Source: Neoechinorhynchus agilis (lineage: Eukaryota; Animalia; Acanthocephala). Taken from it: 64,000 bases of DNA. The notes under the pieces were generated by a model. It saw only the letters and a list, made by a program, of their open reading frames with translations, was not told where the DNA came from and made no database searches. A program made the position numbers and the translations under genes. Every line of letters begins with the position of its first letter. The first letter of the stretch is position 1. Positions 2 through 27,340 of the stretch are shown piece by piece. Where the stretch lies: contig CM121341.1 in assembly GCA_051530055.1 (NCBI GenBank), positions 2,469,561 through 2,533,560 on the forward strand, given 5' to 3'.

Positions 2-649
2 TTGAGGTGCAGCACCATCTTTATTCAGGAGTCCAAGTCTGTCTATAATGTTCATGACCTACCTCAATGTCTCAGCTCACTGACCGAACAATTTGTCATA
101 TTTTGTACCCCTCCTCATTCGCCGAATTCCCAAGGTCTACTGTCTTTTTTCCGGCCTTCTCTCGGTCCCACACAGATTACATCGTATTCCTCCGATGATC
201 TGTCCTATTCAATTTTTTCAGTTTGTTTTAATGGCTCTAAACTTTTATTAGCAAATATCTATGTCCGGCCTCATAAGATACATCTCCCTTGTAATAAGTC
301 CATACTGAAGAACATCTTAGGGTCCGGTATTGACTATTGTTTTGGCGATTTCAATGATCCTTCGCATAGATGGATCAATTCTATTATTCGTTCTGGAAAG
401 TCCCACAACATTATTATGCCCGATTATCCTACTTTTACTGACGGATCTTCATCCTCTTACTTGGATCTATGCATATACCGCAAAACTGGTTTTTACAAAC
501 CTATTTTAACTTCTCAATCTTCTCCCTTTCGGGTCGCTGGACACGACTTGTTAGTTTGGGAGCTCGACAAGAACGTTCTTTTATCGCGAAAGTTCAAATT
601 GGGATGGTTGAATGTCAGTCTCTTCAATGCTGTTACCCGACATTCGTGA
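2..649 (+). mobile_element. APE (apurinic/apyrimidinic-like) endonuclease domain of a non-LTR retrotransposon ORF2; its 5' end runs off the window
   Basis: Ordered EEP-family motifs: IFIQES (catalytic E), LLLANIYVRP, CFGDFND, PTF...SYLDLCI and GHDLLVW (SDH-like), followed by a LINE-type linker RKFKLGWLN. Stop at 647-649. Confidence 0.85.
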
Positions 650-752
650 TTCTCCAAATCCTACAGCTTAAATGAATCACAAGACCGGTCAGAGTAAGAG
701 GAATTTTCAATCGATGCTGCTAGCACGTTACCCTTAACTCTGTAACGATGAG

Positions 753-1154
753 GTGCCTCCTAGTGTCTTAGAAAGTGTACGTAATAGTCGAGTTGGAGCA
801 CACATCGTTAAGGCGACGCCTACAGCAGAGACCACTGCTGCGCACGAGCCGACCGTATCCTCAAATCGACAACCGAAAGTTCGTTTCGCTGAATGTGTAG
901 ATGTTTGTGTGTCCGACACAGAAATTGTCGCTGTTGAGAAGGCGATTTCCGAATCATATCAGACTTCTATCGCCGAGTGTGCGACTTCACAGGCCGAGTT
1001 GCCACCATCTCCCGGAGATCCTAAAAACTGGTGCATTCTCGGACTGTGTCCATTTGCTACCACTGACCAAAGAACTTTAATTGAATCGATCTTGGCAATA
1101 ATCTCTAGGTATCCAAAGAAAATCTATGATGTTTACAGTCTTGTAAGAAAGTAG
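753..1154 (+). pseudogene. Orphan 133-aa ORF, possibly a degraded N-terminal part of viral ORF1
   Basis: Same strand and frame as the 1266-aa ORF. Coding-like sequence continues past the TAG with a probable frameshift near 1225. No recognisable motif. Confidence 0.35.
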
Positions 1155-1472
1155 GTTTTGAGATTTCATCTCCAGCGTTTGGCTCCCCTCAATCGTATTC
1201 CGACTTCTTTGGGAGAGTTGCTTCACGATGTTCGCCGACCTTAGAGACTCTAAACCACTATCTGCTTTCAGCTACTGATTACTATGACTTGTATGGAATG
1301 CTTTCTACAAAAACATGTCGTAATTGCAAATGTAGTATCATTCCACAAGATGTGACGGAAACGGCCGTTTACACTTGGCCGCATTATCTTCGGATCTTCC
1401 TACATTTCTCTTCAAACGATGAGCTGTCCTCGAGAGACCTTTAGCGGCGTCACGGAAGGAAGACGAAGTTTC

Positions 1473-1772
<300 letters not shown>

Positions 1773-1967
1773 TCCGCGTGTCACGACGCTGCGCTGGGCC
1801 TGATGTCGAGCAACCGAGTTGAACCTCGGTATGATGACTGCGTGTTGCTGGCAACTGGACCTGGTTAGGACGCTGACCAGGTCGGTCTCGTCGGGGTCAC
1901 CAATTTAGCGGCGCCACGTGGTACGGACGAAGTATTATTATATTATTATTATATCTACATTGGTCAA

Positions 1968-4900
1968 ATGCTTGTTGTCCTTCATTCGGCGAAAGGAAAC
2001 TTCTTCCGGCTGTCCGTCATTCACGTGAAAGAAGTCGCAGCCACAGACCTATTCGAAGTCCCACAAGACGGACACACGGTAAGGATTAAGAGAAGCTCAT
2101 CTAACTTTATCCTCCTACAGTGCTTGGTAGTAGCCCAACTGTTCAAGCTAAAACAACTTTCTAAGGTCGAGCTTTCTGCAGGGGGCCTAGTTACAGCATT
2201 AGGCGTGTCTATGGATACATATGACGCTTTGACTACGAAAGAGGCGAGAATAGATCTGATCATCCGGACCCTTTTAAAGCGGGCTCAATCCGCCATGATT
2301 TCTAGAATGCTCGACGTTATCGAATCTGTTGCAGGACCTAAATTAGTCACTCCCGTTGCGAAACAAGTGGAAGACAAAGATTCATCTTTATCATCAGTCA
2401 CTCGATCTATCTTATGGAAAACCCCGAGCCGGCTCTCTGAAGTTCAAGGAGAATTGTCGCGAACGGTCTACACAGATTTATTAGGTAATGACAATTCTGC
2501 GAATGCACGAGCTAGATTTCGAGATAGAGCTGTTAAAATCCTTGATGACAGAAAGGCCCATTTTGTTGGTCTTAAGAAGAAACCTCGAGACACCGTGTTG
2601 AATCGAGCCTTAGAAGATTTGCGGGTTGCTCAAAATGGTATTGATGGCAGTCTGGCTATAATAGACGGGGTTATGGAGGAGATCCAAGCTACCGCTAATC
2701 TCGATGATCTTCCCATAATGAACGTCTATCGTGATGACCTAGACCTTGAATCGCTCGTGAATTGCCCGGTTGACCTCGGAACTGCGTTTATGGCCTATAT
2801 GTCCAGGGCCAAAGCTACTGTTGGGCAAGCAGAGATGGTGAGAGTTGTCAAGAAAGGGCGCTATAATAATGTCACATCTTTCGTTCCTACCGATAAGACC
2901 GGGTCTTTTACCCGTGATATGGAATCCGCTATCCGCAATATCAAATACAACGATGCTTTCGTCGGTCCGACCACTATAAACGAGAAATCGTCAGACATCG
3001 ATCATAAAATTCGTAATGATGTTAGGGTGCGAGCGCATTATTTACTGAATAAGATCGGAGTGTCCAAAAAAAGGTTGATGGGACTGTGTTACGCTCATCG
3101 TTCAAACTTACCTCTAACTTCTCGCAATCAGAATCTTTGTGCAGCTTTCTGTAGAGAGCTTGAACTATTGGATGGTCAAGGGAAGCTACTAGAAAAGGCC
3201 GAGTGGCGCGTATCTAGAAGGTTGGCTCTCCTTTCCTTTCTCCGGAACAGACACTTCAGACGATTCTGTTCTTCAAGCTGGATTTCGGCGGACGCTGTCC
3301 GTACCTTAGTAAGAAACGGTGTGAGCTCGTTTGTGAGTTCTTATATCTCCATCGTTCTGGCTGGGAGTGACGGTTATGCTGAACGCCTTTCCGAGGAGTG
3401 GAATGGTCTTATGCATGCTATTAACGGCAACCCGATGTCTGTACCCTACATTCCTACAGGGTATCAAATGACCGTTGAGCATGTCCACTATACTAATACC
3501 ACTCTTAAGATGACGACTGTCTTGGCTGGGAACTATTCCCTCTTCCGAACTCTGCCACTCGCTAGAGTGATTATCTTGACATCTGGACTTCCGGTTATCT
3601 TACATGATTATGGGTTACAGCGTATGGAAAATGGCGATTTTCTCACCGAGGATATGCGGACGATGGCTGCTGCTGCAAAGTGTGCCTTTTTTGGTGATGG
3701 TGAGACCAAAGATATTCAATATTATGCCGGAACCACAGTCAATCTCGCCGATATGCATGCACCCCTCTGGCTGGCTGGCGGCTTTTCTTATTGCACCTCT
3801 GGTGTCATCGGCCCCGGAGCTAATGATGATTGGCGTCAGATCTCCATCTCTGTGCGTCCTGGAACCGATTCACGACCGGAATCCCTACATATCTTTGCAG
3901 GAGAGCGCCCAGCAGCGCCAGTTGTTATCAAAACCAAGACATGTTGGGATCGAGTCTTTCACTTTATTCTCTCTGATGATATAGGCGTCAATTTTCGGAT
4001 GGACTTTACTCGGGTCCTAAATACAGTAAGTCATCTAAGTCCTATGCTTGGGATCCGTACGTTGTGTGGTTCAGTCTCGTTAGACCACTATAGGGATGGC
4101 TCTCCAGCAACATTTGCCAGGCTTAGAGCGTTGCTCTCTTTCGATAAGAATCCAGAAGTCACTAGCCCCCCACCAAATGGCGAGACGAATTTGATGGGCA
4201 CGATTAGGCGGATGTGGTCGTCACAGCCTTTCGAAGTGATATGGATCCGCATGTCAGTAGTTGAATATCTGAATTCTATTGCAGTCAACAATATCTCGTG
4301 GTTGGAAGGGGACAATATGCACAATTGGGCATACGACGGGAGAGTTTTGGCACTCGTGGAGCAGTATTTTCCTATTCCGCATGAGCAGCTGTTCCGTTTG
4401 GTAGCCACCGTCTGGAATCCCACACTCATTGACGAGATTTATATGAATGATTCCGGTGGAAGTTTCAACCACTTCGTCTTAATGGACTCTTTCGCTAAAA
4501 CACCTGATAAGGAATTCATGGTTATTACCGTCACTCTCGAGGAGATAGCTGTTCAGGTGCGACGTTTCACCTACGACCATTCAAACGGTATGGGCGGCTT
4601 TCCTTATGACGGAATGGGTTTATCTATTCTTAACGGCTCTCCCACGAATGAGTCTTTCGACCAGATCCCTCTCCAGGAAGAGCTTTTATCTTATATGGCG
4701 TTATCCGGTAACACATTACATCATCAGGTGATGGGTAGGTTAAATGTGCCCTACTCGTCCGGCGTTCGCCTGTTCTGGCATTATGACCCAGGCTTCTATT
4801 TCTATCCTCTTGTTCAACTTGGAATGCTTAGGGTTGAAGATCTTCCTGCTGCCCGTGATAGATGCGGGCCTCAGGATGAGTTAATTTATTACTCTCCTCC

Positions 4901-5768
4901 GAATGTCCTGCCAAGACTAAGATGTTTCCTTCATAAACTCAGCGTGAGGCTCGATACAATGCAAGTTTCTGTTAAAACTGCCACGCCGGAAGCCTCGTGG
5001 GTTCTAGGCACGGTTAGTGATACCGCATTTAAAAATACCAGAACTATTATTGGCGCCATCAGTGCATTTATGGGACCTCCGTTAGCATATGCTTTTGCTG
5101 TCTGGGCAGATGATCCTGCCGTTACTATTTCTAACGAGAGGACCACTTTACACTGGTGTTTGGTATCGAAACACATTGGAATTTCTATCGGCTCTGGAAT
5201 TACTACATATTCTGAAAGTTATGGGAGGGTTTCTTTGGGCGTGCCTTATATGCAGGCTGCTCAGACTACGAACGACGAACTCAGTACAAAATTCTTCTTC
5301 AATAATGCTGTCTGGTCCATTGTAGTCACGGACTCTTTAAAGTTGTTTAGGGTCGGGCCGATCACCCCTCTTACACGAGAAATGATGCCTTTGATCACTT
5401 TGAAAGGCTTCGTCGCGGGTGTTCGTTCGGATATCACACTTCCAGGCGTTCTACTCCCGAGGTCGTGTAGAGGTCAGTTCGATGTCATAACAATCGACTC
5501 TTTGTTCGCTATGCACATTAAGCTTAACCCTTATGTTCGCCTGTTATTTACCCTTGCTAACAACGCCAGCTGCGAAACGCGTTACGATAAGGGTACGTTT
5601 GACGTCAAAAGAGAAGAGAAATATGCTGACCCTTTTGGTATAGCGAGATGTTTCGAGGGGGACTCTCCGCTAGCACCCATAGCCCCGGGACGTCGAGTCT
5701 CTACCAAGCGTCAGATTCAAAAGGCTACTTCAGATTTAGTGGATGTGTCTGCAGAGGAGCAGAATTGA
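1968..5768 (+). CDS. Intact 1266-aa ORF1 of the toti-like EVE; putative major capsid/structural polyprotein
   Basis: Uninterrupted 3.8-kb intronless ORF in the ORF1 position, upstream of a slippery site and the RdRp. The capsid call is positional; no fold motif was recognised by eye. Confidence 0.65.
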   Translation: MLVVLHSAKGNFFRLSVIHVKEVAATDLFEVPQDGHTVRIKRSSSNFILLQCLVVAQLFKLKQLSKVELSAGGLVTALGVSMDTYDALTTKEARIDLIIRTLLKRAQSAMISRMLDVIESVAGPKLVTPVAKQVEDKDSSLSSVTRSILWKTPSRLSEVQGELSRTVYTDLLGNDNSANARARFRDRAVKILDDRKAHFVGLKKKPRDTVLNRALEDLRVAQNGIDGSLAIIDGVMEEIQATANLDDLPIMNVYRDDLDLESLVNCPVDLGTAFMAYMSRAKATVGQAEMVRVVKKGRYNNVTSFVPTDKTGSFTRDMESAIRNIKYNDAFVGPTTINEKSSDIDHKIRNDVRVRAHYLLNKIGVSKKRLMGLCYAHRSNLPLTSRNQNLCAAFCRELELLDGQGKLLEKAEWRVSRRLALLSFLRNRHFRRFCSSSWISADAVRTLVRNGVSSFVSSYISIVLAGSDGYAERLSEEWNGLMHAINGNPMSVPYIPTGYQMTVEHVHYTNTTLKMTTVLAGNYSLFRTLPLARVIILTSGLPVILHDYGLQRMENGDFLTEDMRTMAAAAKCAFFGDGETKDIQYYAGTTVNLADMHAPLWLAGGFSYCTSGVIGPGANDDWRQISISVRPGTDSRPESLHIFAGERPAAPVVIKTKTCWDRVFHFILSDDIGVNFRMDFTRVLNTVSHLSPMLGIRTLCGSVSLDHYRDGSPATFARLRALLSFDKNPEVTSPPPNGETNLMGTIRRMWSSQPFEVIWIRMSVVEYLNSIAVNNISWLEGDNMHNWAYDGRVLALVEQYFPIPHEQLFRLVATVWNPTLIDEIYMNDSGGSFNHFVLMDSFAKTPDKEFMVITVTLEEIAVQVRRFTYDHSNGMGGFPYDGMGLSILNGSPTNESFDQIPLQEELLSYMALSGNTLHHQVMGRLNVPYSSGVRLFWHYDPGFYFYPLVQLGMLRVEDLPAARDRCGPQDELIYYSPPNVLPRLRCFLHKLSVRLDTMQVSVKTATPEASWVLGTVSDTAFKNTRTIIGAISAFMGPPLAYAFAVWADDPAVTISNERTTLHWCLVSKHIGISIGSGITTYSESYGRVSLGVPYMQAAQTTNDELSTKFFFNNAVWSIVVTDSLKLFRVGPITPLTREMMPLITLKGFVAGVRSDITLPGVLLPRSCRGQFDVITIDSLFAMHIKLNPYVRLLFTLANNASCETRYDKGTFDVKREEKYADPFGIARCFEGDSPLAPIAPGRRVSTKRQIQKATSDLVDVSAEEQN
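5630..5686 (+). promoter_or_regulatory. Candidate -1 programmed ribosomal frameshift signal: C CCU UUU heptamer plus downstream stem/pseudoknot
   Basis: CCCTTTT at 5630-5636 is phased X XXY YYZ in ORF1 (GAC CCT TTT). The -1 frame opens right after a TGA at 5627-5629 and runs to 5863. Stem TAGCG-AGA (5641-5648) pairs with TCT-C-CGCTA (5664-5672). Loop GGGG (5657-5661) can pair with CCCC (5683-5686). Confidence 0.65.
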
Positions 5769-5868
5769 GAGCTTCCACTTATCCAAGTGAAAATCTTCAC
5801 GAGAATCTTCGAATGATCACAAGGTTCATGCCAACAGATGTTAAAATTATAATAAATAACTAAAAAAC

Positions 5869-8800
5869 GGTTAGGTCGCACCAACTCTTGTCTAGGCGGC
5901 GGCGATGGTTTAATATGGGACAGGCTAAATCTATTATATGCTTCTGATTTAATCATTAATACGTACTCTAGCCCTGTTAAACATCCCGGTGTCGACATCT
6001 AGCGTGAAATGTTAGTCAGCCGCACTTGGTCCACCTCTGGAGCCGCGAATTCCGGACATTATTCTTCGACAGAGAAAATCCTTCGGGTTAGTCAAAGCGA
6101 AAGAGTGGCTAGGGCGCACCAACTCTTGTCTAGGCGGCGGCGATGGTTTAATATGGGACAGGCTAAATCTATTATATGCTTCTGATTTAATCATTAATAC
6201 GTACTCTAGCCTTGTTAAACATCCCGGTGTCGACATCTAGCGTGAAATGTTAGTCAGCCGCACTTGGTCCACCTCTGGAGCCGCGAATTCCGGACATTAT
6301 TCTTCGACAGAGAAAATCCTTCGGGTTAGTCAAAGCGAAAGAGTGGCTAGGGCGCACCAACTCTTGTCTAGGCGGCGGCGATGGTTTAATATGGGACAGG
6401 CTAAATCTTATTATATGCTCCTGATCTAATCATCAATACGTACTCTAGCCTTGTTAAACATCCCGGTGTCGACATCTAGCATGAAATGTTAGTCAGCCGC
6501 ACTTGGTCCACCTCTGGAGCCGCGAATTCCGGACATTATTCTTCGACAGAGAAAATCCTTCGGGTTAGTCAAAGCGAAAGAGTGGCTAGGGCGCACCAAC
6601 TCTTGTCTAGGCGGCGGCGATGGTTTAATATGGGACAGGCTAAATCTATTATATGCTTCTGATTTAATCATTAATACGTACTCTAGCCTTGTTAAACATC
6701 CCGGTGTCGACATCTAGCATGAAATGTTAGTCAGCCGCACTTGGCCCACCTCTGGAGCCGCGAATTCCGGACATTATTCTTCGACAGAGAAAATCCTTCG
6801 GGTTAGTCAAAGCGAAAGAGTGGCTAGGGCGCACCAACTCTTGTCTAGGCGGCGGCGATGGTTTAATATGGGACAGGCTAAATCTATTACATGCTCCTGA
6901 TCTAATCATTAATACGTACTCGGCCTTGTTAAACATCCCGGTGTCGACATCTAGCGTGAAATGTTAGTCAGCCGCACTTGGTCCACCTCTGGAGCCGCGA
7001 ATTCCGGACATTATTCTTCGACAGAGAAAATCCTTCGGGTTAGTCAAAGCGAAAGAGTGGCTAGGGCGCACCAACTCTTGTCTAGGCGGCGGCGATGGTT
7101 TAATATGGGACAGGCTAAATCTATTATATGCTTCTGATTTAATCATTAATACGTACTCTAGCCTTGTTAAACATCCGGTGTCGACATCTAGCGTGAAATG
7201 TTAGTCAGCCGCACTTGGTCCACCTCTGGAGCCACGAATTCCGGACATTATTCTACGACAGAGAAAATCCTTCGGGTTAGTCAAAGCGAAAGAGTGGCTA
7301 GGGCGCACCAACTCTTGTCTAGGCGGCGGCGATGGTTTAATATGGGACAGGCTAAATCTATTATATGCTCCTGATCTAATCATTAATACGTACTCTAGCC
7401 TTGTTAAACATCCCGGTGTCGACATCTAGCGTGAAATGTTATCAGGCTCTACTTGGTCCACCTCTGGAGCCGCGAATTCCGGACATTATTCTTCGACAGA
7501 GAAAATCCTTCGGGTTAGTCAAAGCGAAAGAGGCCAGGGCGCACCAACTCTTGTCTAGGCGGCGGCGATGGTTTAATATGGGACAGGCTAAATCTATTAT
7601 ATGCTCCTGATCTAATCATCAATACGTACTCTAGCCTTGTTAAACATCCCGGTGTCGACATCTAGCGTGAAATGTTAGTCAGCCGCACTTGGCCCACCTC
7701 TGGAGCCGCGAATTCCGGACATTATTCTTCGACAGAGAAATTCCTTCGGGTTAGTCAAAGCGAAAGAGTGGCTAGGGCGCACCAACTCTTGTCTAGGCGG
7801 CGGCGATGGTTTAATATGGGACAGGCTAAATCTATTATATGCTCCTGATCTAATCATCAATACGTACTCTAGCCTTGTTAAACATCCCGGTGTCGACATC
7901 TAGCGTGAAATGTTAGTCAGCCGCACTTGGTCCACCTCTGGAGCCGCGAATTCCGGACATTATTCTTCGACAGAGAAAATCCTTCGGGTTAGTCAAAGCG
8001 AAAGAGTGGCTAGGGCGCACCAACTCTTGTCTAGGCGGCGGCGATGGTTTAATATGGGACAGGCTAAATCTATTATATGCTTCTGATTTAATCATTAATA
8101 CGTACTCTAGCCTTGTTAAACATCCCGGTGTCGACATCTAGCGTGAAATGTTAGTCAGCCGCACTTGGTCCACCTCTGGAGCAGCGAATTCCGGACATTA
8201 TTCTACGACAGAGAAAATCCTTCGGGTTAGTCAAAGCGAAAGAGTGGCTAGGGCGCACCAACTCTTGTCTAGGCGGCGGCGATGGTTTAATATGGGACAG
8301 GCTAAATCTATTATATGCTCCTGATCTAATCATCAATACGTACTCTAGCCTTGTTAAACATCCCGGTGTCGACATCTAGCGTGAAATGTTAGTCAGCCGC
8401 ACTTGGTCCACCTCTGAGCCGCGAATTCCGGACATTATTCTTCGACAGAGAAAATCCTTCGGGTTAGTCAAAGCGAAAGAGTGGCTAGGGCGCACCAACC
8501 TTTGTCTAGGCGGCGGCGATGGTTTAATATGGGACAGGCTAAATCTATTATATGCTCCTGATCTAATCATCAATACGTACTCTAGCCTTGTTAAACATCC
8601 CGGTGTCGACATCTAGCGTGAAATGTTAGTCAGCCGCAATTTCTTCGCTTTTTGGTCCACACCTCTGGAGCCGCGAATTCAGGACATTATTCTTCGACAA
8701 GAAAATCCTTCGGGTTAGTCAAAGCGAAAGAGTGGCTAGGGCGCACCAACTCTTGTCTAGGCGGCGGCGATGGTTTAATATGGGACAGGCTAAATCTATT

Positions 8801-10359
8801 ATATGCTTCTGATTTAATCATTAATACGTACTCTAGCCTTGTTAGACATCCCGGTGTCGACTAGCGTGAAATGTTAGTCAGCCGCACTTGGTCCGTTCTT
8901 GGAGCCGCGAATTCCGGACATTATTCTTCGATGAGAAAATCCTTCGGGTTAGTCAAAGCGAAAGAGGGCTAGGCGCACCAACTCTTGTCTAGGCGGCGGC
9001 GATGGTTTAATATGGGACAGGCTAAATTCCATGCATGCTCCTGATCTAATCATTAATACGTACTCTAGCCTTGTTAAACATCCCGGTGTCGACATCTAGC
9101 GTGAAATGTTAGTCAGCCGCACTTGGTCCACCTCTGGAGCCGCTAAATTCCGGACATTATTCTTCGACAGAGAAAATCCTTCGGGTTAGTCAAAGCGAAA
9201 GAGTGGCTAGGGCGCACCAACTCTTGTCTAGGCGGCGGCGATGGCTTAATATGGGACAGGCTAAATCTATTATATGCTTCTGATTTAATCATTAATACGT
9301 ACTCTAGCCTTGTTAAACATCCCGGTGTCGACATCTAGCGTGAAATGTTAGTCAGCCGCACTTGGTCCACCTCTGGAGCAGCGAATTCCGGACACATTAT
9401 TCTTCGACAGAGAAAATCCTTCAAGTTAGTCAAAGCGAAAGAGTGGCTAGGGTGCACCAACTCTTATCTAGGCGGCGGCGATGGTGGTTTAATATGGGAC
9501 AGGCTAAATCTATTATATGCTCCTGATCTAATCATTAATACGTACTCTAGCCTTGTTAAACATCCCGGTGTCGACATCTAGCGTGAAATGTTAGTCAGCC
9601 GCACTTGGTCCACCTCTGGAGCCGCGAATTCCGGACATTATTCTTCGACAGAGAAAATCCTTCGGGTTAGTCAAAGCGAAAGAGTGGCTAGGGCGCACCA
9701 ACTCTTGTCTAGGCGGCGGCGATGGTTTAATATGGGACAGGCTAAATCTATTATATGCTCCTGATCTAATCATCAATACGTACTCTAGCCTTGTTAAACA
9801 TCCCGGTGTCGACATCTAGCGTGAAATGTTAGTCAGCCGCACTTGGTCCACCTCTGGAGCCGCGAATTCCGGACATTATTCTTCGACAGAGAAAATCCTT
9901 CGGGTTAGTCAAAGCGAAAGAGTGGCTAGGGCGCACCAACTCTTGTCTAGGCGGCGGCGATGGTTTAATATGGGACAGGCTAAATCTATTATATGCTTCT
10001 GATTTAATCATTAATACGTACTTTAGCCTTGTTAAACATCCCGGTGTCGACATCTAGCGTGAAATGTTAGTCAGCCGCACTTGGTCCACCTCTGAGCCGC
10101 GAATTCCGGACATTATTCTTCGACAGAGAAAATCCTTCGGGTTAGTCAAAGCGAAAGAGTGGCTAGGGCGCACCAACTCTTGTCTAGGCGGCGGCGATGG
10201 TTTAATATGGGACAGGCTAAATCTATTATATGCTTCTGATCTAATCATTAATACGTACTCTAGCCTTGTTAAACATCCCGGTGTCGACATCTAGCGTGAA
10301 ATGTTAGTCAGCCGCACTTGGTCCACCTCTGGAGCCGCGAATTCCGGACATTATTCTTC
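5869..10359 (+). repeat. Tandem array of a 238-bp unit (18 full copies plus one 5'-partial copy) derived from the viral RdRp N-terminal coding region
   Basis: The GTCGAC site occurs 19 times at ~238-bp spacing. One frame reads KEWLGRTNSCLGGGDGLIWDRL...GVDI*REMLVSRTWSTSGAANSGHYSS. The last copy continues in frame into unique RdRp sequence (RSSQLGFKLPKTKSSLSLW). Confidence 0.95.
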
Positions 10360-11897
10360 TAGATCTAGTCAGTTGGGCTTTAAGTTACCCAAGACAAAAT
10401 CGTCTCTATCTTTGTGGGCCACAGATCAAGATATTTATGATATGATCACTCGTACCGAAATATGAAGAGTTGGGTAAAACGAGGCACATTCTAAGATCCG
10501 ATGATTCAACTTATCTGAAACAGGTTTTCGTTGAGAAGTGTCTCGGCTTGCCTTCTGCGCCCATTATCGACAATATCAAAGTGGTCTCTCCGATCTTCTG
10601 TGATCCTCACGATTGGCTCCTTCAACTTAGGGAATTTGGTTCTACAGTGAGCAACCGGGACCGATATTCCGTGCAATTAGACCACTCTAAATTTGATGAG
10701 CATCAGTCTGGACCTCTGATTAGGTGTATTATGGTGCAACTTCTCTCACACGCTAACAAGAGGTATCCGGCCATTCTGACACCTCTAAAAGATAGCTTAT
10801 TGAGCACGTTTCTCACTCGTGCGAGTGTGGAACTTGCCGCTGGCGGTCACGTCTGTTTTCATTTGGGAGGTCTTCCTTCTGGCTGGAAATGGACAGCTCT
10901 AATAGATACCGTGTTAAACTATTCCTTGAATAGGGCTGCGATTGATATTGTAGGCCTGCCTTTGCAACCCAGTATCATGGCTCATATGGGTGACGATTCT
11001 CTCTGGTTCGTTAAAACTGACAACTTAACAACTGCTATTCAGGTTCGGTCTTTTCTAAACTGGAAGGGGTATACTCTTAACGCTTCCAAGAATTATATAT
11101 CTAATGTGTCGAGCGACTTTTTAGGCTACACTTCCACCTCTGCTCTCAGTATTCGAGGAGCGCCCTCTTGGATGATACCGACCATCGTAACTTCGCATTC
11201 GCGTATAGGTTACGAGATCCCGCCCGTGTTGCGCGCTTTTTCAGCACTGTGGAATTGGGTTATGGTTATCAAGAGGCTTGAGGGGATTGTAGCTAAGAAA
11301 GTAATGATACCGCTGCTTTTAAAGGATGTCTCAGGAATTTCCAAACGATCGACTATCGATGTCATTCATTACCTTAATACTCCGATTTCACTCGGGGTAG
11401 CCGGATTGACCGGACTATCAACTTACCTTGGATTTGAGAGCGCTAACAAAGCCATCACTCTATTGCGCGAGCCTGAATATTACGATCTGTCAAAGTTGAT
11501 TACCAAAACCACTCCTTTATCTCTTTGCTTACCTCGAATACATGCCAAACTATTCGAAACAGCGATGAATCAATATTGTGAAAGAACACTCTCCACGCGC
11601 AAGGCAGCCAATTTGTATTTTCAGCGCGTCGGCAGTGTTAAAATCAGGCGCAGCAAGTGCCCTAGTATATCGCAGTTGTTACCTGCACGCTGGAGTTTGT
11701 GTTGGTCGAGGGCAATAGAATCTACATTGAAAGAGTTAACAACTAGATCTAGATCGGTGTTTCGCCTCTTGTCATTCCGAACTAAGACACTGTATGTGCT
11801 TTTTAACAAGAGGAGACATTCATGGGCCTTGATTAGATCTTGGCTCCTTGGGCGTTTGCCTACCGTACGTAAATTCGTGTTTATCCACCGAGCTTAA
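10360..11897 (+). pseudogene. Toti-like virus RNA-dependent RNA polymerase: core intact, N-terminus disrupted
   Basis: KTKSSLSL, then a frameshift near 10446-10465, then KYEELGKTRHI...D..YLK (motif F), LDHSKFDEHQ (A), GGLPSGWKWTALIDTVLN (B), HMGDD (C), DFLGY (E) and C-terminal WLLGRLP. Confidence 0.9.
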
Positions 11898-13530
11898 CGA
11901 TATCTACCATTTTCTGGCTGACGCTAGTGACAATTTCCTTACCACAGTCAGGATATCCGCAGGAATACCTCGGAAACCCAATCTATTATCCCTTTACGGC
12001 AAGGAGCTCTTCAAAGCTAAGGCAGCGGGCGACACCAGTTCCTCTAAGTTTTGGTCATCTCTCTACTGGCCGTGCAAAGCCAGATTCCAGATCGCTCAAG
12101 ATCGCAAAATGATCAGCTCTTACCTACCCCACTCATCGGAATGGTGGAGAGTAGTAAACCGGAAGCGCTCCTTCCCATGGAAAAGGGCAGCTGCCGCCTG
12201 GATCAGAGCTTTAGGCTTTGACACAGTCATCAGTGCACTTTGCTCCGAACACTCCAACGGTGCCAGTCCGATTCCCATCGCCACTAGCTTCATACTTCCT
12301 AAACCACGGAGACTTGATCTCACCAAAAAAGATTTTTTGCAATGGTGGACCTCTAACAATCTTACCTCATGCAACGGCTCTTCAGCTTGTTTCAAAGCAA
12401 CCAACGTCTTGAGTAGGGATAACATTTCATTATTGGCCAGTGTCATGCTATTAGCCTCACCTGAAGAATGGTCCGAAATTAATATTGCGAAAAGGATTTT
12501 CCTACGCAAAGGTAAGGTTCGATCAATATCTTCTCCGGGAGATGTGAGACCAATTTCCATTCAAAACTCGCTGGTCTCCATCTATAAGAGAATCCTTGCC
12601 GGGTGGATCGTCGCCTTTTCCTGTGAGCATAATCTCATCGATAAGCGCTGCCATGGCTTCGTTCCCGGCCAATCAGTTCATTCAGCTATGAATGAAATTT
12701 TACATAATTTTGGTCAGAACCGTCGATCTATGAATATCTTGATTTTATTTGATATCAGCAAGGCATTTGACAATATCGATATTGATTTTATCATGATTGT
12801 TATGCGGTATTTTAATTTTCCTTTTAACTTCATAGCTAGGGTTCACAATACTTTGAGGTCTAAGCGGTTCTTTTTCTCGGATAACCTCCGCTGGCTCGAT
12901 CTGCTTGGCCTCTCAATACATAGTTCGAAACTGCACAGTTTGTCCGGTTGACCTGACTGCGATAATTAAGGAGCGTAACTATGTGCAAGCTCGAGCGAAA
13001 CTTGCTGCAGTACTAAAAATTGTAAAAGAAAAACTACCTCACATGGGTCTTGCCTTGAATAAAAAGAAGAATAAGTTATTAATAAAATTGAGATCTGCCT
13101 TGGTAAGCGACACATTAGAGAGTTCGTCAATGAGTTTTTAACCCTTGACTTTTTCCCAGTATACCACAGACTCTACATTCTAGGCTATACCCTCACTAGC
13201 AATTTATCAGTCTTGGCCGACATGAATACGATGAAACGCCTACTGAAAATTGCCAATGCCAAGGAAAAGCGTGCTGCCCGACTAGGCCTCAATGCAGATC
13301 TATTTGGAACTCTTGGGCTATATCTGGTCTAGTCTTCTATTCTAGAGGACGGGCGCCCGAACAACGCCAGAGCTTTCGCTGCACATTCCTGAGACTCAGT
13401 TCTGTTCTCCCCTTCGCATGGGCCAACTGCGTTGACTGGACCACCAAAGTGGACAAATGAACAGCGATCGCCAATGAATGATACGTTCGATTTATTCAAA
13501 CTATCTCACATGGTCCTTCTGCGAATAAAT
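11898..13530 (+). mobile_element. Non-LTR retrotransposon ORF2 linker plus degenerate reverse transcriptase (3' half of the split LINE)
   Basis: EWWRVVNRK linker, RKGK...DVRPISIQNSLVSIYKRILA, HGFVPGQS, LFDISKAFDNID. The PQG domain is missing and YADD is degraded (CPVDLTA). GLALNKKK and YILGYTL occur in shifted frames. AATAAA near 13523. Confidence 0.85.
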
Positions 13531-13535
13531 TTTTT

Positions 13536-14000
13536 TTGATGAGGTGTCGCAGTTTACATGTAAAAACTTTTGTGCTCCCAATCCGTAATTACGAGACGCC
13601 GCGTAGCTTGTTTTTTTTATTAATTGCATTTAATTTTTTTAATGTGATTAGACGTAATAGATCCCAATTAGTCATTTATCAAAATACCGGGACACACAAT
13701 GATCGGAATGAAGCTAAAAGATTTCTGAATAACCTGAGAGGAAATATTAGGACAAATGAATGTCACGCTTACCAAGATAATCCCAGGAGTGCTTTAAATT
13801 CACAGAAAGCGTCGAGTACACAAAGTTACGACAAGAATTATAGTAGCCGGGCACATCATCGTCGGAAAATCGAGCGTTTCTTAACAAATACAGAGAGCTC
13901 AATAACCGAACGTTGGTTGATGAATGCTGCCCACGGTTTGGAGTACTATAAAAAAAGATATGGAAGAATCATGAATTTGGAGAAGAACGTCATACAATGA
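13536..14000 (+). CDS. Hypothetical 154-aa ORF or exon
   Basis: ORF only; no motif recognised. Confidence 0.25.
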   Translation: MMRCRSLHVKTFVLPIRNYETPRSLFFLLIAFNFFNVIRRNRSQLVIYQNTGTHNDRNEAKRFLNNLRGNIRTNECHAYQDNPRSALNSQKASSTQSYDKNYSSRAHHRRKIERFLTNTESSITERWLMNAAHGLEYYKKRYGRIMNLEKNVIQ

Positions 14001-14139
14001 CGTATTTAGATGTTTAAATATATTTTTTTCATGGGACTTTAGAAATCTCCTTTTGCTGTCCACATTGAAAAAAGAAATAAAATGGTAATTTATTAAAATT
14101 CTTTATTCAAAATTGCTGCAAGGTTTGCCCGGGTGCGAA

Positions 14140-14430
14140 CTAATAATAACACGTTTATTTGTTAGTTAACAAAGAAAAGGACCATGTATCTTTGGGTCCT
14201 CATAAAAACTCGGATTTAGATTTGTTCAATGAATGCGGTTGTTGATTTTGGAGTGGATTACGGTTAGTTAAAGATAAAATCCATGAGTATGTGGAAGTGG
14301 GGAAAAATTATATATCAAAGAATAACTTTAATTGAAATATTTCGTCCAATCACAATGGACTTCTTCAGTCAATTATTGTATTCTGAGGTTTCCTCACTTT
14401 CACATACTCATGGATTTTATCTTTAACCGG
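14140..14430 (-). mobile_element. 3' end of a LINE-like element with an inverted, partly duplicated 5' segment
   Basis: The minus strand shares GTAATCCACTCCAAAATC and a terminal AAATAAACGTGTT with 47260-47326. A ~40-bp inverted repeat lies at 14267-14306 / 14388-14427. Confidence 0.5.
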
Positions 14431-14769
14431 AATTATGTTCACCATCATTTAATTTCTTAAAGCGATTTTTAATTCTAAAAATCAACTATTCTAAGTTTCA
14501 TGCGTATGAAACAATTTTAATAAAATTCGAAAAAAAATCAATAATAACGTCCACAACGACAACAACACATTTCTTCTTGTTTACCAAAATCGCCTTCTTT
14601 ACATTCATTGTTTCCTTCAGACGAATGCGTCAACCGTTCAGCAACTTCTTTCAAATTCGATTTCTTGTAGAACTTCCCGTAATCATCCATAGTTGTTGAA
14701 TAATCATGAAAAATCCCTCCAGGCCTCATTTCTAAGGCCACAATGAAATACGGCACCAGCACGTCATCG

Positions 14770-14782
14770 GTTGCCTAGCAAC
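14770..14782. promoter_or_regulatory. RFX X-box (GTTGCCTAGCAAC)
   Basis: Exact fit to GTYRCC-N1-RGYAAC, next to ACGTCA (a CRE half-site on the minus strand), upstream of the 15376 exon. Confidence 0.55.
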
Positions 14783-15014
14783 ATGAAACCTATGAACTGG
14801 TCAAACACCGAAAAGGATCAAAAACTTGAAATTTCCACATTTTAAACAAAATAAGAATACATCGAAGACTTTATCTTCGTTCTTTCGTAAATTTACGTAA
14901 CGATGACACAACACCCGGAAATGGATTTTTTTAAATAAGAAGCAATATTAAACGTTCAATTCCCCGATAAAAGTGCAGCGTTTATTTAGTTTAATTGGCA
15001 TATTTTACAAAATG

Positions 15015-15326
15015 AGATATTTCAAAATTGACAGCTTCCTCAATCATCTAAAAAGGTTTTAGTTATTTTCTATCTCACGGGATTATGATCACTACATCTC
15101 CAAATCTTTAATCACGAAGGATTTTACTGTTTATTATTAGTTTCTTTGAAGATGTTGGAATCTTAATTCCTCTTGGATAAGAAATCGTTTATTTAGATAT
15201 TTCAAAATTGACAGCTTCCTCAGTCATCTAAAAAGGTTTTAGTTATTTTCTATCTCACGGGATTATGATCACTACATCTCCAAATCTTTAATCACGAAGG
15301 ATTTTACTGTTTATTATTAGTTTCTT
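15015..15326. repeat. Direct duplication of ~132 bp (15015-15146 and 15195-15326; period 180 bp)
   Basis: Near-identical sequence, seen directly. Confidence 0.9.
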
Positions 15327-15375
15327 AAATGATTAAACAGGGAGTGTGTCAAAATCCATCCTTTGATTTCATTAG

Positions 15376-16890
15376 ATGCCGTCTTCTTCTCATGAATCAA
15401 ATCTGTCATCTTCTGTTAATTTGAACACTACACCTTCTCCAAACCGCGAATCTAGCCTCGTAACAGTAATCTCCCCGTCTCTCTTGTGCGATTCATCAGC
15501 TTCAAGGTTGGAGAATGCTTCAGTTGACTCAGTGAAAGACTTTGTTACTGTCTTAGAAAATCATTTGGAGAATTTCTTGAAGGAAACAATGATCAGTCGA
15601 CTTAAAGAAGCGTTTTTACGGTCGAAAATTGTGAAACCGTTGATGGACCCGTCGTATACAGCATCGGAAAAGACCGTATTTTGTTTGAAGGAATCTCTCC
15701 ATGAGCACTTGGAACGGTTGATTGGTGAAATCGACACAAGAATTCCCCTGGATGAATATTTTGAAAAGTTACTGAAATCCATGAACCCGTTAGAGGTTTG
15801 CGAGCATGCTGAAAAGGCCTTACTTGAAATTTGTCCGAATTTGTTTGACACTGTAGTAACTGGAGGCGGTTTGGTTGATACTAAGTTCGACAATATTGTC
15901 TTGGATTGTATAAAACGCGTTATGAGTATTTTAGAATCGTTATCTGACGATAGACTGACTACTGGGCTCAAAGACGTTTCTAAATTTTTTGGAAATTTGA
16001 CATGTTCGGACGGCGAGATGAGTCTGATCGATGGAAATCAATTTAATCTTAGTAAAGTTGAGATGCCGTCGTGGGTACGAAAGTTTGCAGCCGCTAGCAC
16101 CGTTCGAAAAAAGCTTCAACAAGAACACGTACCGAGTTTTCTTGACGACGTTCCACTAATCGGTGACATGACCGTTAATCCGATTGATCAATCTTTTGCA
16201 ATGATGTTAAATGGATTTATAGGTGAAAAATCGGCAGCATGTGAATCGAAGAAACTTATCGATATGTCTGTTAACGAATTGGATGAGAGAATCACTGGTC
16301 ACAAAACGAACGGAGGTGAACAAGGAGAAGATTGTCTAAAGGAAATCACACAAACTTTGTCGTTGAGGATTAATGAAAATACTCAAAAGATCGATAGATT
16401 AGCGCATAACATCGATATTGCAGAGAAACTTGAGATTGTGATAAAGGCACTTCAGTCAAATCAAAAGACGTGCATTCATCATGATGAATGTATTCAGGTT
16501 GATGTTACCCAAGCGACTATGACGGACGCTTGTATCGGTCCAGATTATATTGTTAGTTCGGATTTGGGTACAAACACAAGTCCAGTTCTCACTCGAAATG
16601 TAAAACTTGGACAAACTCCAATTAAAAATAAAGACGTTTCAATAAACACAAGGAAAAGCTTATCAGTTAATACGAATAAAGAATCATCTCCTTTACGATC
16701 TACCAGAACTGAATGTGGAATTCAAATATGCTCGCAGGGCTCGGATGTAAAAAGTTTGCAGGATGCAGTCGAGAAGTTAAAACAGGACAAAAGGACAATG
16801 CTTTCTACAATGCAGCAACTTCATCAGCTAAATAAACGATTAAAAAATGAAAATGATCGATACAAACTTCCATCGAAAGCGAATCAGTGA
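15376..16890 (+). CDS. 504-aa low-complexity protein or large exon with a C-terminal coiled coil
   Basis: Long ORF preceded directly by TTTCATTAG (acceptor-like). Heptad-like C-terminus (LQDAVEKLKQDKRTMLSTMQQLHQLNKRLKNENDRYK). Confidence 0.6.
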   Translation: MPSSSHESNLSSSVNLNTTPSPNRESSLVTVISPSLLCDSSASRLENASVDSVKDFVTVLENHLENFLKETMISRLKEAFLRSKIVKPLMDPSYTASEKTVFCLKESLHEHLERLIGEIDTRIPLDEYFEKLLKSMNPLEVCEHAEKALLEICPNLFDTVVTGGGLVDTKFDNIVLDCIKRVMSILESLSDDRLTTGLKDVSKFFGNLTCSDGEMSLIDGNQFNLSKVEMPSWVRKFAAASTVRKKLQQEHVPSFLDDVPLIGDMTVNPIDQSFAMMLNGFIGEKSAACESKKLIDMSVNELDERITGHKTNGGEQGEDCLKEITQTLSLRINENTQKIDRLAHNIDIAEKLEIVIKALQSNQKTCIHHDECIQVDVTQATMTDACIGPDYIVSSDLGTNTSPVLTRNVKLGQTPIKNKDVSINTRKSLSVNTNKESSPLRSTRTECGIQICSQGSDVKSLQDAVEKLKQDKRTMLSTMQQLHQLNKRLKNENDRYKLPSKANQ

Positions 16891-22009: not shown

Positions 22010-24000
22010 TAAAACACGTTTTATTAATTAAGAAGAACGATCCATAAACTTGCCAGCATCAATCCCTGCTGAAGGTGTCTGGATGTCGAATGTTGAGGCA
22101 GGGAGGTGCGACTTGTCTTTGAAGGAGTTTTACAGGAGAATGACAGATTAGGAGTCTTTCTTTGTTCTTTGGTTATTAAGGAAAGATTGGGCTTGAGGGA
22201 AGAAAGATTTTTGGTAGAGGGTGGTACGAGCGAGGGGGGGGATGAAAAAGGTTGGGGTTCCGGGTGTTTACTAAGGACGAGTATTTAGAGATGAGGGAAG
22301 AAAATTGTGGAGGGGGTTGAAGAAGACGGAGGGCGTTTTTGGAGAAAATGGAGTGGAGGTGGGCGTCGAGGGGAGGGAGTGAAGTCCCGCATATTTTAGC
22401 TGCTCTCTTGTGGAAGGTTTCGAGGGAATGGAGAGCATTGGCGGAATGGGCGAGGAAAGTGGGGAAAGCGTATGTAAGGATAGGAAGGATGTCAGAGAGA
22501 TAAAAGTGGGCAAGGTGTTTAAGGGAAACGCCGAGACGCCGGAGGAGTTTGAGAAGGTAAAGACGAGGGTTTGCTTTAGAGAGCGTAAATGAAATGCGGG
22601 CATTCCATTTAAGGTTTTCTTGTGAAATCTGGCAAAGTATCCGGAGAAAAGAGGAGCGTTGGATGGGGAGTGGGGCGGGGATAAGATTGCGTTTGGGAAT
22701 GTGGGGGACAAGCTCAAAAGATTTGGATAAATTTAGGGAGAGGTTTAGGGTGGAGGGCGAGGAAATGAGATGGTTGAGCTCGTTCATGGTAGTGGAGAGG
22801 GAGAGAGAGGGAGATGCGATGGTAATGACTGTGAGGTCATCGGCATAGAGAAAATATTTCGTAGGGGTAGTGAGGGGATGAAGGTCATTTAGAAAAATGT
22901 CAAAGAGGAGAGGGGAAAGTACGGCGCCTTGGGGGACCCCTTTAAATATGGGTAGAGAGGTGGAACAAGAAGTTCCACATTGGATATATTGTTCGCGGTT
23001 GGAGAGGAAAGAGGAAATCCAAGCGAGTTGCCAAGTTGGGAGGCCAAAGGAAGCATATGATTGGAGGAGAATGGAGTGATCTACCGACTCAAACGCCCTG
23101 GAAATATCCAGTTGCACGAGACGGACGGTTGATTCTGGATTGGAATCTAAGCTGCGCACAAGGGTATCGTAGATGCAGAGGAGGGCATCAGAACAAGAGT
23201 AATTTGGACGGAAAGCGAATTGGGAGGGGGAGATGTTTTTGAGGAAGAAGGGAAGTAGCCGGGTTTTAAAACATTTTTTTATGATTTTAAAGAAAGGTGA
23301 GAGGATAGAGATGGGACGAAACTATGTGGAGGAAATCCGTTTATTGTTTTTGGGTAGGGGACGACACGGGCTTCCTTAAGAAATAGAAAGCTAAGGTTCG
23401 TTATGTGCGTTAGAGGATCGATAAGTTCCGGGATGATGAAACGAATGGCCCAATTTGGAATAGTCGAATTAGTGGAAGAATGGCGGGGCAGGCGTTTGAG
23501 GATCTCTAGGATTTCGAGAGGGGAAACTAAGAAAGGGTATGTATGAATGGGCGGGTCCGAAAGTGAGAAGGGAGGTTGGGACAATGGAGAGGAGGTTTAA
23601 GGAGGACATAGGTTTTTATTCATGGTGTTGAGGATTGAGAGGAGATCAGATTTGGGGAGATATGCGAAGGGGTGGATCTGCCAAAACCAGTGACATTTTT
23701 TATTTCACACCACCAGTTTCGATTGGGAACGGACGAGAGGCGAGATGAGAAAAGTAATTTGCGGGCTATACGGATGCGTTTTGTCAGTGTGGAGTGGAGG
23801 GAGGGGTAAGCAGGATTACCTGACCGGAAAGCTTCGGTGACCTGTATTTGAAGGGTTTTTAGAAAAGGAGAGAACCATGGAGGGTCGCGGTTCGAGATTC
23901 GTATTGTTTTGCGAGGAAAGGAAGCCTTCATCGCACATTCTATTAGATTTGACAAAGAGCCCATTGCAATCGAGAGTCGGTGCATCAGATATGGGGAGAA
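22010..24000 (-). mobile_element. 5'-truncated, frameshifted APE-type LINE (CR1/L2-like) with reverse transcriptase
   Basis: VRLVQLDISRAFESVDH, GVPQGAVLSPLLF, YADDLT and PPWFSPFLK; 3' end AATAAAACGTGTT. Confidence 0.9.
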
Positions 24001-25164: not shown

Positions 25165-27340
25165 AATCTTTTTAGAGAACGTTAACGACGATTTCTATTA
25201 TCTTATTTATGTCTCTGATGAAATTCATCAATAGAATTTCTTCAAAAAAGGATTTCCAAGCGTTTAGAGTTTACCCTTGGAATCATTAAAAAAATATTCA
25301 ATTTATGTCTTTAATGTAATTCATCAATAGAATTTTTAATTTCTTCTTAAAAAATCAATAATGTTTAAGAATTTACCCTTGGAATCATTAAAAAAACATT
25401 TAGCCTTTTAGAGACGATTTCTATTATCTAATTTGTGTCTTTAATGTAATTCGACAATAATTTAATTTCTTCTTAAAAAATCCATAAGTGTTCAGAATTT
25501 ACCCTTGGAATCATTAAAAAGACATTTAGCCTTTTAGAGACGATTTCTATTATCTAATTTATGTCTTTAATGTAATTCATCAATAGAATTTCTTCTAAAA
25601 AGGATTTCCAAGTGTTCAGAATTTACCCTTGGAATCATTTAAAGAACATTTAGCCTTTTAGAGACGATTTCTATAATCTAATTTGTGTCTTTAATTTAAT
25701 TCATCAATGGAATTTCTTCTAAAAAGGATTTCCAAGTGTTCAGAATTTACCCTTGGAATCATTAAAAAGACATTTAGCCTTTTAGGGACGATTTCTATTA
25801 TCCAATTTATGTCTTTAATTTAATTCATCAATAGAATTTCTTCTAAAAAGGATTTCCAAGTGTTCAGAATTTACCCTTGGAATCATTAAAAAGACATTTA
25901 GCCTTTTAGGGACGATTTCTATTATCCAATTTATGTCTTTAATTTAATTCATCAATAGAATTTCTTCTAAAAAGGATTTCCAAGTGTTCAGAATTTACCC
26001 TTGGAATCATTTAAAGAACATTTAGCCTTTTAGAGACGATTTCTATTATCTAATTTATGTCTTTAATTTAATTCATCAATAGAATTTCTTCTAAAAAGGA
26101 TTTCCAAGTGTTCAGAATTTACCCTTGGAATCATTAAAAAGACATTTAGCCTTTTAGGGACGATTTCTATTATCCAATTTATGTCTTTAATTTAATTCAT
26201 CAATAGAATTTCTTCTAAAAAGGATTTCCAAGTGTTCAGAATTTACCCTTGGAATCATTAAAAAGACATTTAGCCTTTTAGAGACGATTTCTATTATCTA
26301 ATTTATGTCTTTAATGTAATTCATCAATAGAATTTCTTCTAAAAAGGATTTCCAAGTGTTCAGAATTTACCCTTGGAATCATTAAAAAAACATTTAGCCT
26401 TTTAGAGACGATTTCTATAATCTAATTTGTGTCTTTAATTTAATTCATCAATGGAATTTCTTCTAAAAAGGATTTCTAAGTGTTCAGAATTTACCCTTGG
26501 AATCATTAAAAAGACATTTAGCCTTTTAGGGACGATTTCTATTATCCAATTTATGTCTTTAATTTAATTCATCAATAGAATTTCTTCTAAAAAGGATTTC
26601 CAAGTGTTCAGAATTTACCCTTGGAATCATTAAAAGAACATTTAGCCTTTTAGAGACGATTTCTATAATCTAATTTATGTCTTTAATGTAATTCATCAAT
26701 AGAATTTCTTCTAAAAAGGATTTCCAAGTGTTCAGAATTTACCCTTGGAATCATTAAAAAGACATTTAGCCTTTTAGAGACGATTTCTATTATCTAATTT
26801 ATGTCTTTAATGTAATTCATCAATAGAATTTCTTCTAAAAAGGATTTCCAAGTGTTCAGAATTTACCCTTGGAATCATTAAAAAGACATTTAGCCTTTTA
26901 GAGACGATTTCTATAATCTAATTTATGTCTTTAATGTAATTCATCAATGGAATTTCTTCTAAAAAGGATTTCCAAGTGTTCAGAATTTACCCTTGGAATC
27001 ATTAAAAAGACATTTAGCCTTTTAGAGACGATTTCTATTATCTAATTTATGTCTTTAATGTAATTCATCAATAGAATTTCTTCTAAAAAGGATTTCTAAG
27101 TGTTCAGAATTTACCCTTGGAATCATTAAAAAAACATTTAGCCTTTTAGAGACGATTTCTATTATCTAATTTGTGTCTTTAATGTAATTCATCAATGGAA
27201 TTTCTTCTAAAAAGGATTTCCAAGTGTTCAGAATTTACCCTTGGAATCATTTAAATAACATTTAGCCTTTTAGAGACGATTTCTATTATCTAATTTGTGT
27301 CTTTAATGTAATTCGTCTACATAATTTTTAATTTCTTCTA
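25165..27340. repeat. AT-rich 124-bp minisatellite, ~17-18 copies, degenerate at the left edge
   Basis: ACCCTTGG recurs every 124 bp from 25501 to 27237, with degenerate copies further left. Confidence 0.97.

Follow-up and report, generated by a model that had tools for sequence, protein, structure and literature searches.

Endogenous viral elements (EVEs) that derive from non-retroviral RNA viruses are mostly short, and how such fragments entered the genome can no longer be read from them. The bornavirus-like N elements of mammals are EVEs that were integrated by long interspersed nuclear elements (LINEs) from single-gene mRNAs, and they carry a target-site duplication, a 5' truncation and poly(A). 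A short target duplication and a 5' truncation, together with microhomology at the 5' junction, also characterize 5'-truncated LINE-1 insertions and processed pseudogenes. Virus-retrotransposon chimeric cDNAs include the recombinant between lymphocytic choriomeningitis virus and the intracisternal A particle (LCMV-IAP), reportedly described by Geuking in 2009, and viral DNA forms found in insects; these are template-switch products in which the retroelement is fused to the viral sequence on one side. Here we describe a toti-like EVE in a stretch of 64,000 nucleotides (hereafter the window) from the acanthocephalan Neoechinorhynchus agilis (assembly GCA_051530055.1, contig CM121341.1, positions 2,469,561 to 2,533,560). 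The viral sequence interrupts open reading frame (ORF) 2 of a LINE, and comparison with a relative in which the target is uninterrupted fixed both junctions to the base. The element probably arose when toti-like viral (+)-sense RNA was retroposed into a pre-existing copy of the LINE, with a 7-bp target-site duplication.

Toti-like EVEs are already well known in arthropods and fungi, and the element in the window is another such EVE. Like those, it consists of endogenised ORF1 and RNA-dependent RNA polymerase (RdRp) sequences, has companions in the same genome and contains an open frame (PMC4231630). The toti-like EVEs of Armadillidium vulgare are mostly fragments averaging 173 residues, at which no target-site duplications were seen (PMC4231630), whereas the present element retains about 7 kb of viral sequence, has two readable junctions and occurs in another host phylum. 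What is unusual here is the length, the legibility of the junctions and a tandem array that grew out of part of the polymerase gene. Outside the host, the only named relatives of its ORF1 and RdRp are the proteins of Schistocephalus solidus toti-like virus 3 (SsTV3), an exogenous two-ORF toti-like double-stranded RNA (dsRNA) virus of a fish tapeworm, of which no endogenous copies were found in the host genome (PMC7305300). The two genes have the same order in both, and the size of ORF1 agrees (SsTV3 has a 1624-residue ORF1 and an 840-residue polymerase). Unlike the virus, the window copy, which is about 30% identical to it, lies in host DNA, is truncated at both ends and is broken. For Acanthocephala the only viral report found concerned Mononegavirales-like RdRps in Pomphorhynchus laevis (PMC12548735).

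N. agilis parasitises fish. Its genome was assembled with MaSuRCA as a hybrid of Illumina, Oxford Nanopore Technologies and a small amount of HiFi DNA data, followed by Hi-C scaffolding; viral elements are not mentioned in the genome paper (PMC12690905). On CM121341.1 (19.4 Mb) the RdRp fragment is an annotated product, and the annotation lists ORF1 as the hypothetical protein ACOME3_000485. That model has 1246 residues, and the 1266-residue ORF1 product had no match in an exact look-up. The window contains no runs of N, and host genes are present elsewhere in it (two PP2C phosphatases, a Kazal-domain protein and a HEAT-repeat protein). At the level of the assembly, the toti-like insert is host chromosomal DNA, being gap-free sequence on a 19.4-Mb chromosome record with host genes nearby.

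All parts of the element are on the (+) strand. The insert breaks the LINE ORF2 at 641/648, and the ORF continues, with unchanged strand, at 11873/11880. Its 5' piece (2..641), which is cut by the window start, comprises the C-terminal ~210 codons of a putative apurinic/apyrimidinic endonuclease (APE)-type domain and the first linker codons, in a frame that is open from the window start (2) to 646. The 3' piece (11880..13510, the end being estimated from the relative) is a broken gene for the linker and the reverse transcriptase (RT). Here a frame is open from 11833 to 12948; beyond it, shorter frames of changing phase run to ~13.5 kb, and this stretch has two or more in-frame stops and at least one change of frame. 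The sole database relative of the right-hand frame was a 509-residue protein (P0003) of P. laevis, another acanthocephalan. The left frame (2-646) aligned to its residues 31-239 (37% identity, E 2e-43) and the right frame, from 11833, to its residues 297-507 (36%, E 2e-36). At the corresponding P. laevis locus (L007) both LINE parts lie inside one uninterrupted 825-codon APE-RT frame. In tblastx, window positions 80-631 matched L007 6166-6714, and the right LINE piece matched L007 6889-7728, 8098-8220 and 8242-8316. Because a single P. laevis frame covers both halves with identical spacing, the two belong to one LINE family and stand in native order, the order that the first-pass annotation of this DNA had stated; an origin from different LINE clades, which would have refuted that annotation, is not borne out. 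In P. laevis a 430-codon open frame without a Pfam family (L007 4673-5962) lies just 5' of the APE-RT frame and is probably ORF1 of this compact LINE family.

The domain assignments made earlier for the two LINE pieces, APE on the left and RT on the right, hold in part. The 825-codon frame of L007 contained a full-length RVT_1 domain (2.7e-29), and its Exo_endo_phos match was sub-threshold (E 2e-4, 21.7-22.9 bits against a cut-off of 24.5). Neither Pfam nor PDB gave a match to the endonuclease piece of the window, whether it was searched alone or in a profile built with its relative; its translation shows GDFN-, PTF- and HD-type motifs. The AlphaFold2 model of the P. laevis LINE protein had a predicted local distance difference test (pLDDT) score of 41 and was therefore too poor for a fold search. 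The endonuclease call, weaker than the first-pass annotation implied, thus follows from homology to the P. laevis protein, whose own score falls short of the Pfam threshold. The RT was recognized by RVT_1 (7e-11), but only positions 6-99 of the 205 profile positions were detectable. No RT profile signal was left in the 3' piece after 12948, and the catalytic part is ~90 nt shorter than in L007. The nearest solved RTs were R2 proteins (E 0.008-0.02). As far as its sequence tells, the flanking RT is dead.

The heptamer ATTCGTG occurs at both borders of the insert, at 642..648 and at 11873..11879, in the same codon phase of the LINE frame; the left copy can be read as a target-site duplication or as microhomology, and the SsTV3 alignment ends within the first bases of the right copy. 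Each LINE piece was compared separately with L007, without joining the flanks. The last left block ended at 631 (L007 6714) and the first right block started at 12037 (L007 6889). Between these blocks L007 has 174 nt (58 codons), and the window has 17 (632-648) plus 157 (11880-12036), which also makes 174 when the heptamer is counted once. No LINE base was lost or gained at the insert and the frame was kept, so that the earlier statement that little linker is missing can be sharpened: none is missing. Pairs of zones of the same size taken at random from the window shared a 7-mer of any kind in 3.5% of cases, and the phase match together with the exact spacing makes a chance heptamer unlikely. 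We also weighed a longer duplication of ~25 bp, diverged and including a further 7-mer common to both sides (AGCTTAA), and rejected it: the two copies would have to differ by ~30%, at odds with the open LINE frames, and the collinearity of the left copy with the viral sequence of an N. agilis paralog locus, L004, also speaks against it.

The first base of the left heptamer is also the first with viral homology; L004 has ATGCGTG here (6/7 identical). The left heptamer thus has T where the viral sequence of the paralog has G; weakly, such a T would be expected if these bases came from the target strand acting as primer. At the right border neither poly(A) nor a LINE tail was present, and viral coding sequence abuts the heptamer.

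An assembly chimera or contamination was also considered. Some of the DNA was pooled from ~50 worms, and the long reads were prone to error (PMC12690905). Tandem arrays, one of which lies in the insert, are hard to assemble, and the copy number may be wrong. On the other hand, a dsRNA virus is not present in DNA libraries, the window is gap-free, ORF1 paralogs occur at several chromosomal sites, and a misjoin would yield neither a flanking duplication nor exact in-frame continuity of the LINE. We therefore regard an artefact of this kind as very improbable.

Between the LINE halves, the toti-like ORF1 is a broken gene at 649..5768. Its last 1266 codons form the open frame at 1968-5768 that the first-pass annotation had listed, and several short frames occupy 650-1967. 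No Pfam family matches ORF1. When ORF1 and its N. agilis paralogs were combined in a profile and 1.84 billion representative proteins were searched with it, only two proteins besides those of N. agilis were matched, the ORF1 protein of SsTV3 (QJD26159.1, 1624 residues, E 2.4e-6) and an unnamed protein of 1613 residues. In hhalign, residues 344-511 of ORF1 aligned to residues 759-939 of QJD26159.1 (probability 96.9%, E 1.5e-10), and tblastn gave E 5e-10. The unnamed protein (P0028) is encoded on a 5.7-kb contig from a public sequencing run. It shares a conserved block of the EWN-LMH-INGN type with the window ORF1 and the tapeworm virus ORF1, and is probably ORF1 of another virus of the SsTV3 lineage. 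No relative was found in the PDB with the ORF1 profile, which gave chance matches only, and the AlphaFold2 model of residues 251-900 (pLDDT 31) was too poor for a fold search. By its position, ORF1 may encode the capsid.

The alignment of ORF1 with the virus is offset by ~415-428 residues, hence the 1266-codon frame lacks the start of the viral ORF1. The missing start lies upstream: window 642-1441 is collinear with the sequence 5' of the ORF1 paralogs in L004 and in another N. agilis locus, L006. This part is decayed: two or more stops interrupt its frame, and the frame changes at least once. It is separated from the viral part of the open frame by a nested host repeat (~0.6 kb, within 649-1967) that contains a (TAT)n run and is found in locus L005 as well, with 82-92% nucleotide identity. 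Residue 22 of the ORF is where every paralog alignment begins, indicating that the ATG and the first ~21 codons of the 1266-codon ORF are supplied by the host repeat. By comparison with L006 and SsTV3, the 5' truncation removed roughly 90-170 codons of ORF1 plus the leader. L005 has scrambled partial copies of the host repeat at 2416-3350, and the (TAT)n run is long in the window copy.

The polymerase gene survives as a unique remnant at 10310..11879, corresponding to residues ~226-766 of the 840-residue SsTV3 polymerase. Its open frame (10446-11894) was identified by RdRP_4 (2e-10, 40.5 bits against a cut-off of 22) and RdRP_1 (9e-8) in Pfam, and aligned over 98% of its length to residues 285-766 of the SsTV3 polymerase (P0002; 30% identity, E 9e-66). 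The palm motifs A-C (the DxxxxD, SG-T-N and GDD regions) were aligned to the viral polymerase as well. The identification of a viral RdRp, toti-like (Ghabrivirales-type), is thus sound. A different frame carries the homology further 5', to about residue 226, so one frame change is implied; in the PDB weak matches to picornavirus 3D polymerases were obtained. At the 3' end the last ~74 polymerase codons, relative to SsTV3, and the trailer are absent. ORF1 and the RdRp have their best matches in two proteins of one virus, SsTV3, and so both genes point to the same virus lineage.

The region between the two genes, 5769-10445, has no frame longer than 78 codons. The first-pass annotation had missed that 5872-10359 is a tandem array and not an RdRp reading frame. 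Tandem Repeats Finder (TRF) reported a 238-bp unit in 18.8 copies with 95% matches. The array (~4.5 kb) makes up 40% of the interval that had been claimed as viral and begins only ~90 nt after the ORF1 stop. Its origin could be traced with the help of paralog locus L002, where the gene after ORF1 encodes 364 residues and matches residues 73-240 of the polymerase (E 2e-7). Each array unit encodes residues 276-351 of this L002 gene (60-66% identity, E to 5e-29), that is, one ~79-codon segment of the RdRp N-terminal region that is single-copy in L002. The array is therefore an amplified internal segment of the polymerase, and its 3' end is in register with the unique remnant. Residues 1-275 of the L002 gene have no counterpart in the window; the RdRp lacks its first ~275 codons, so that ~0.8 kb is gone. 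The locus clearly exemplifies how part of a viral polymerase gene can give rise to a satellite-like array. Array units are 91-100% identical to one another. They fall into two loosely alternating subtypes, TRF also giving a period of 475 bp, and some are 99-100% identical, which suggests recent expansion or homogenisation.

In all, ~7 kb of viral sequence is retained, with both genes broken and both ends truncated; the original insert perhaps covered 85-90% of a ~7.9-kb genome. The earlier description of a whole viral genome is thus not tenable, given the truncated ends, the loss from the RdRp, the broken genes and the share taken by the array. Nor could the slippery site that had been reported between ORF1 and RdRp be upheld. 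The only canonical heptamer near the end of ORF1 lies ~94 nt after the stop and is not in X XXY YYZ phase. In the window the ORF1/RdRp junction is destroyed, and no overlap of ORF1 and ORF2 with a -1 frameshift site is present. The second frame of L002 lies in -1 to ORF1 and the two share ~140 nt, which fits the usual plan of the family; no canonical slippery site in phase was found in the L002 overlap.

ORF1 paralogs with 44-59% identity were found at five N. agilis loci (L002-L006), and in L002, L003 and L004 they are followed by RdRp N-terminal pieces, so that the linkage of ORF1 and RdRp is repeated. At least 20 N. agilis gene models are related to ORF1. Acanthocephalans have thus carried relatives of a tapeworm toti-like virus, and N. 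agilis has an ORF1-derived gene family. L002 and L003 are the two ends of one unplaced contig (JBMGUZ010000012.1, 58,976 bp) and carry, in inverted orientation, identical open ORF1 paralogs (1267 residues) with the RdRp N-terminal gene. Several of the other ORF1-like gene models are on small unplaced contigs. In L004 (CM121341.1, ~9.68 Mb) a 1129-residue gene at 13106-16539, with Noda_Vmethyltr and a weak RdRP_3 match, encodes a nodavirus-like replicase and lies directly 3' of the toti-like ORF1 and RdRp N-terminal pieces; two unrelated RNA-virus remnants adjoining each other suggest EVE clusters.

These loci bear on the proposal, made in the first-pass annotation, of a composite mobile element, that is, a LINE that spreads as one unit with the viral ORF1 and RdRp as its cargo. 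All that speaks for it is the arrangement and the openness of the long ORF1. However, the five paralog loci have no adjoining APE or RT, the only trace being a faint linker match 7 kb off in L005, and neither these loci nor the annotated proteins yielded another APE-virus-RT combination. An RdRp core occurs just once among the annotated proteins, and no other copy of this LINE was found in the window. The catalytic part of the RT is undetectable and the RdRp is broken. We consider such an element extremely improbable. The element is unable to replicate or move, and what is seen is an ordinary nested insertion; a virus-retrotransposon hybrid is not shown.

The retroposition of viral RNA into a resident LINE, which we favour, accounts for the locus as follows. 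From the anatomy, the homologies, the duplication and the exact collinearity of the LINE, all read directly from the DNA, we infer an enzymology and an order of events. The (+)-sense RNA of a dsRNA virus related to SsTV3 would have been reverse-transcribed in trans by the RT of a host retrotransposon and integrated in the N. agilis chromosome at a LINE copy that was there before, in the linker between endonuclease and RT. The mode would have been target-primed, as for a processed pseudogene. A staggered cut 7 bp apart would have given the duplicated ATTCGTG, and a few homologous bases within the part of the RdRp gene for the C-terminus may have primed the first strand. Such internal priming would leave poly(A) and the viral 3' end missing. 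The 5' end would then have been joined through microhomology, leaving the copy truncated within ORF1. If the LINE was present beforehand, exact continuity of the target and a short duplication arise automatically. Later decay would have brought stops, a frame change and the host repeat into the start of ORF1, removed ~0.8 kb of the RdRp and amplified one 238-bp RdRp segment to the 4.5-kb array. Read in this way, the locus shows how a dsRNA-virus transcript without poly(A) can reach the germline, by internal priming, 5' truncation and a 7-bp duplication.

The likeness to bornavirus-like N elements (RNA-virus sequence in host DNA, target-site duplication, 5' truncation) is plain, but those came from single-gene mRNAs with poly(A), and the window insert from a two-gene transcript without poly(A), primed internally. 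Compared with LINE-1 insertions and processed pseudogenes, the insert again has no poly(A), had a viral template, and cannot be assigned to a responsible LINE family.

Several points weigh against retroposition with a target-site duplication. The 7-mer match alone is modest, and if both copies are partly viral they represent microhomology and not a true duplication. There is no poly(A) tail, unlike in classic L1-mediated retrocopies. The junction microhomologies were deduced from a ~50% divergent paralog and from SsTV3, not from the donor virus, the junctions are known at the level of the assembly, and the responsible RT cannot be named.

Some of the same observations would be met if a free viral cDNA had been captured at a chromosome break in the LINE by microhomology end joining, with no target-primed synthesis. 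Poly(A) is absent, a few bases of homology are found at both junctions, and both viral ends are truncated. End joining, however, usually deletes target bases; here none was lost and 7 were duplicated, so that a filled-in staggered break would be required. We think this origin unlikely.

A third possibility is a copy-choice chimera, in which the LINE RT, at work at a new target, jumped from its own RNA to a viral transcript, copied ~7 kb of it and jumped back to the LINE RNA, all in one insertion. Template switching of RTs to viral RNA is known in other systems. Virus and LINE agree here in strand and order, and heptamer-like sequence is present at both viral switch points, which could steer both jumps to one position of the LINE. 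This model nevertheless demands two internal jumps, out of and into the LINE RNA, at the identical 7 bases and with no base lost; the left heptamer has the LINE-side base where the viral sequence of the paralog differs, and the RT half of the LINE is far more decayed than most of the viral insert, as fits an older LINE. The LCMV-IAP recombinant and the insect viral DNA forms resemble the present case in that viral RNA was the template of a host RT and its copy came to adjoin retroelement sequence. In those the retroelement is fused by template switching on one side, whereas in the window it is an interrupted target that is continuous to the base. A copy-choice origin thus appears quite improbable. 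The capture suggested by the first-pass annotation survives in its ordinary form only, with viral RNA reverse-transcribed into a resident LINE copy; a toti-like sequence of near-genome length is nested in the LINE ORF2, and a copy-choice chimera is not needed to explain it.

The 1266-codon frame is the only part of the element that could still make a protein. Its openness was considered as a sign of selection, and this was rejected: outside the two decayed patches lesions are rare everywhere, ~1 per 3.3 kb in the LINE flank and the polymerase remnant, so that an open 3.8-kb frame alone is not significant evidence of function. A second reading, independent of copy-choice capture, is that this frame is a domesticated gene. 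It may be set beside the start codon and first ~21 codons taken from the host repeat, and beside the related gene models elsewhere in N. agilis. Assessed jointly, a fossil of copy-choice capture and a domesticated ORF1 seem doubtful at best.

Outside the nested element, a 504-codon ORF without a Pfam family lies just 3' of the LINE remnant (15376-16890, + strand). An Rfam scan of the window gave no match. An RT fragment of another retroelement is present at 22176-23159 on the (-) strand (RVT_1 4e-21), and BLAST detected no similarity between it and the interrupted LINE. Further tandem arrays, of unassigned origin, occupy 25300-27314 (124 bp x 16.2) and 32749-33765 (208 bp x 4.9).

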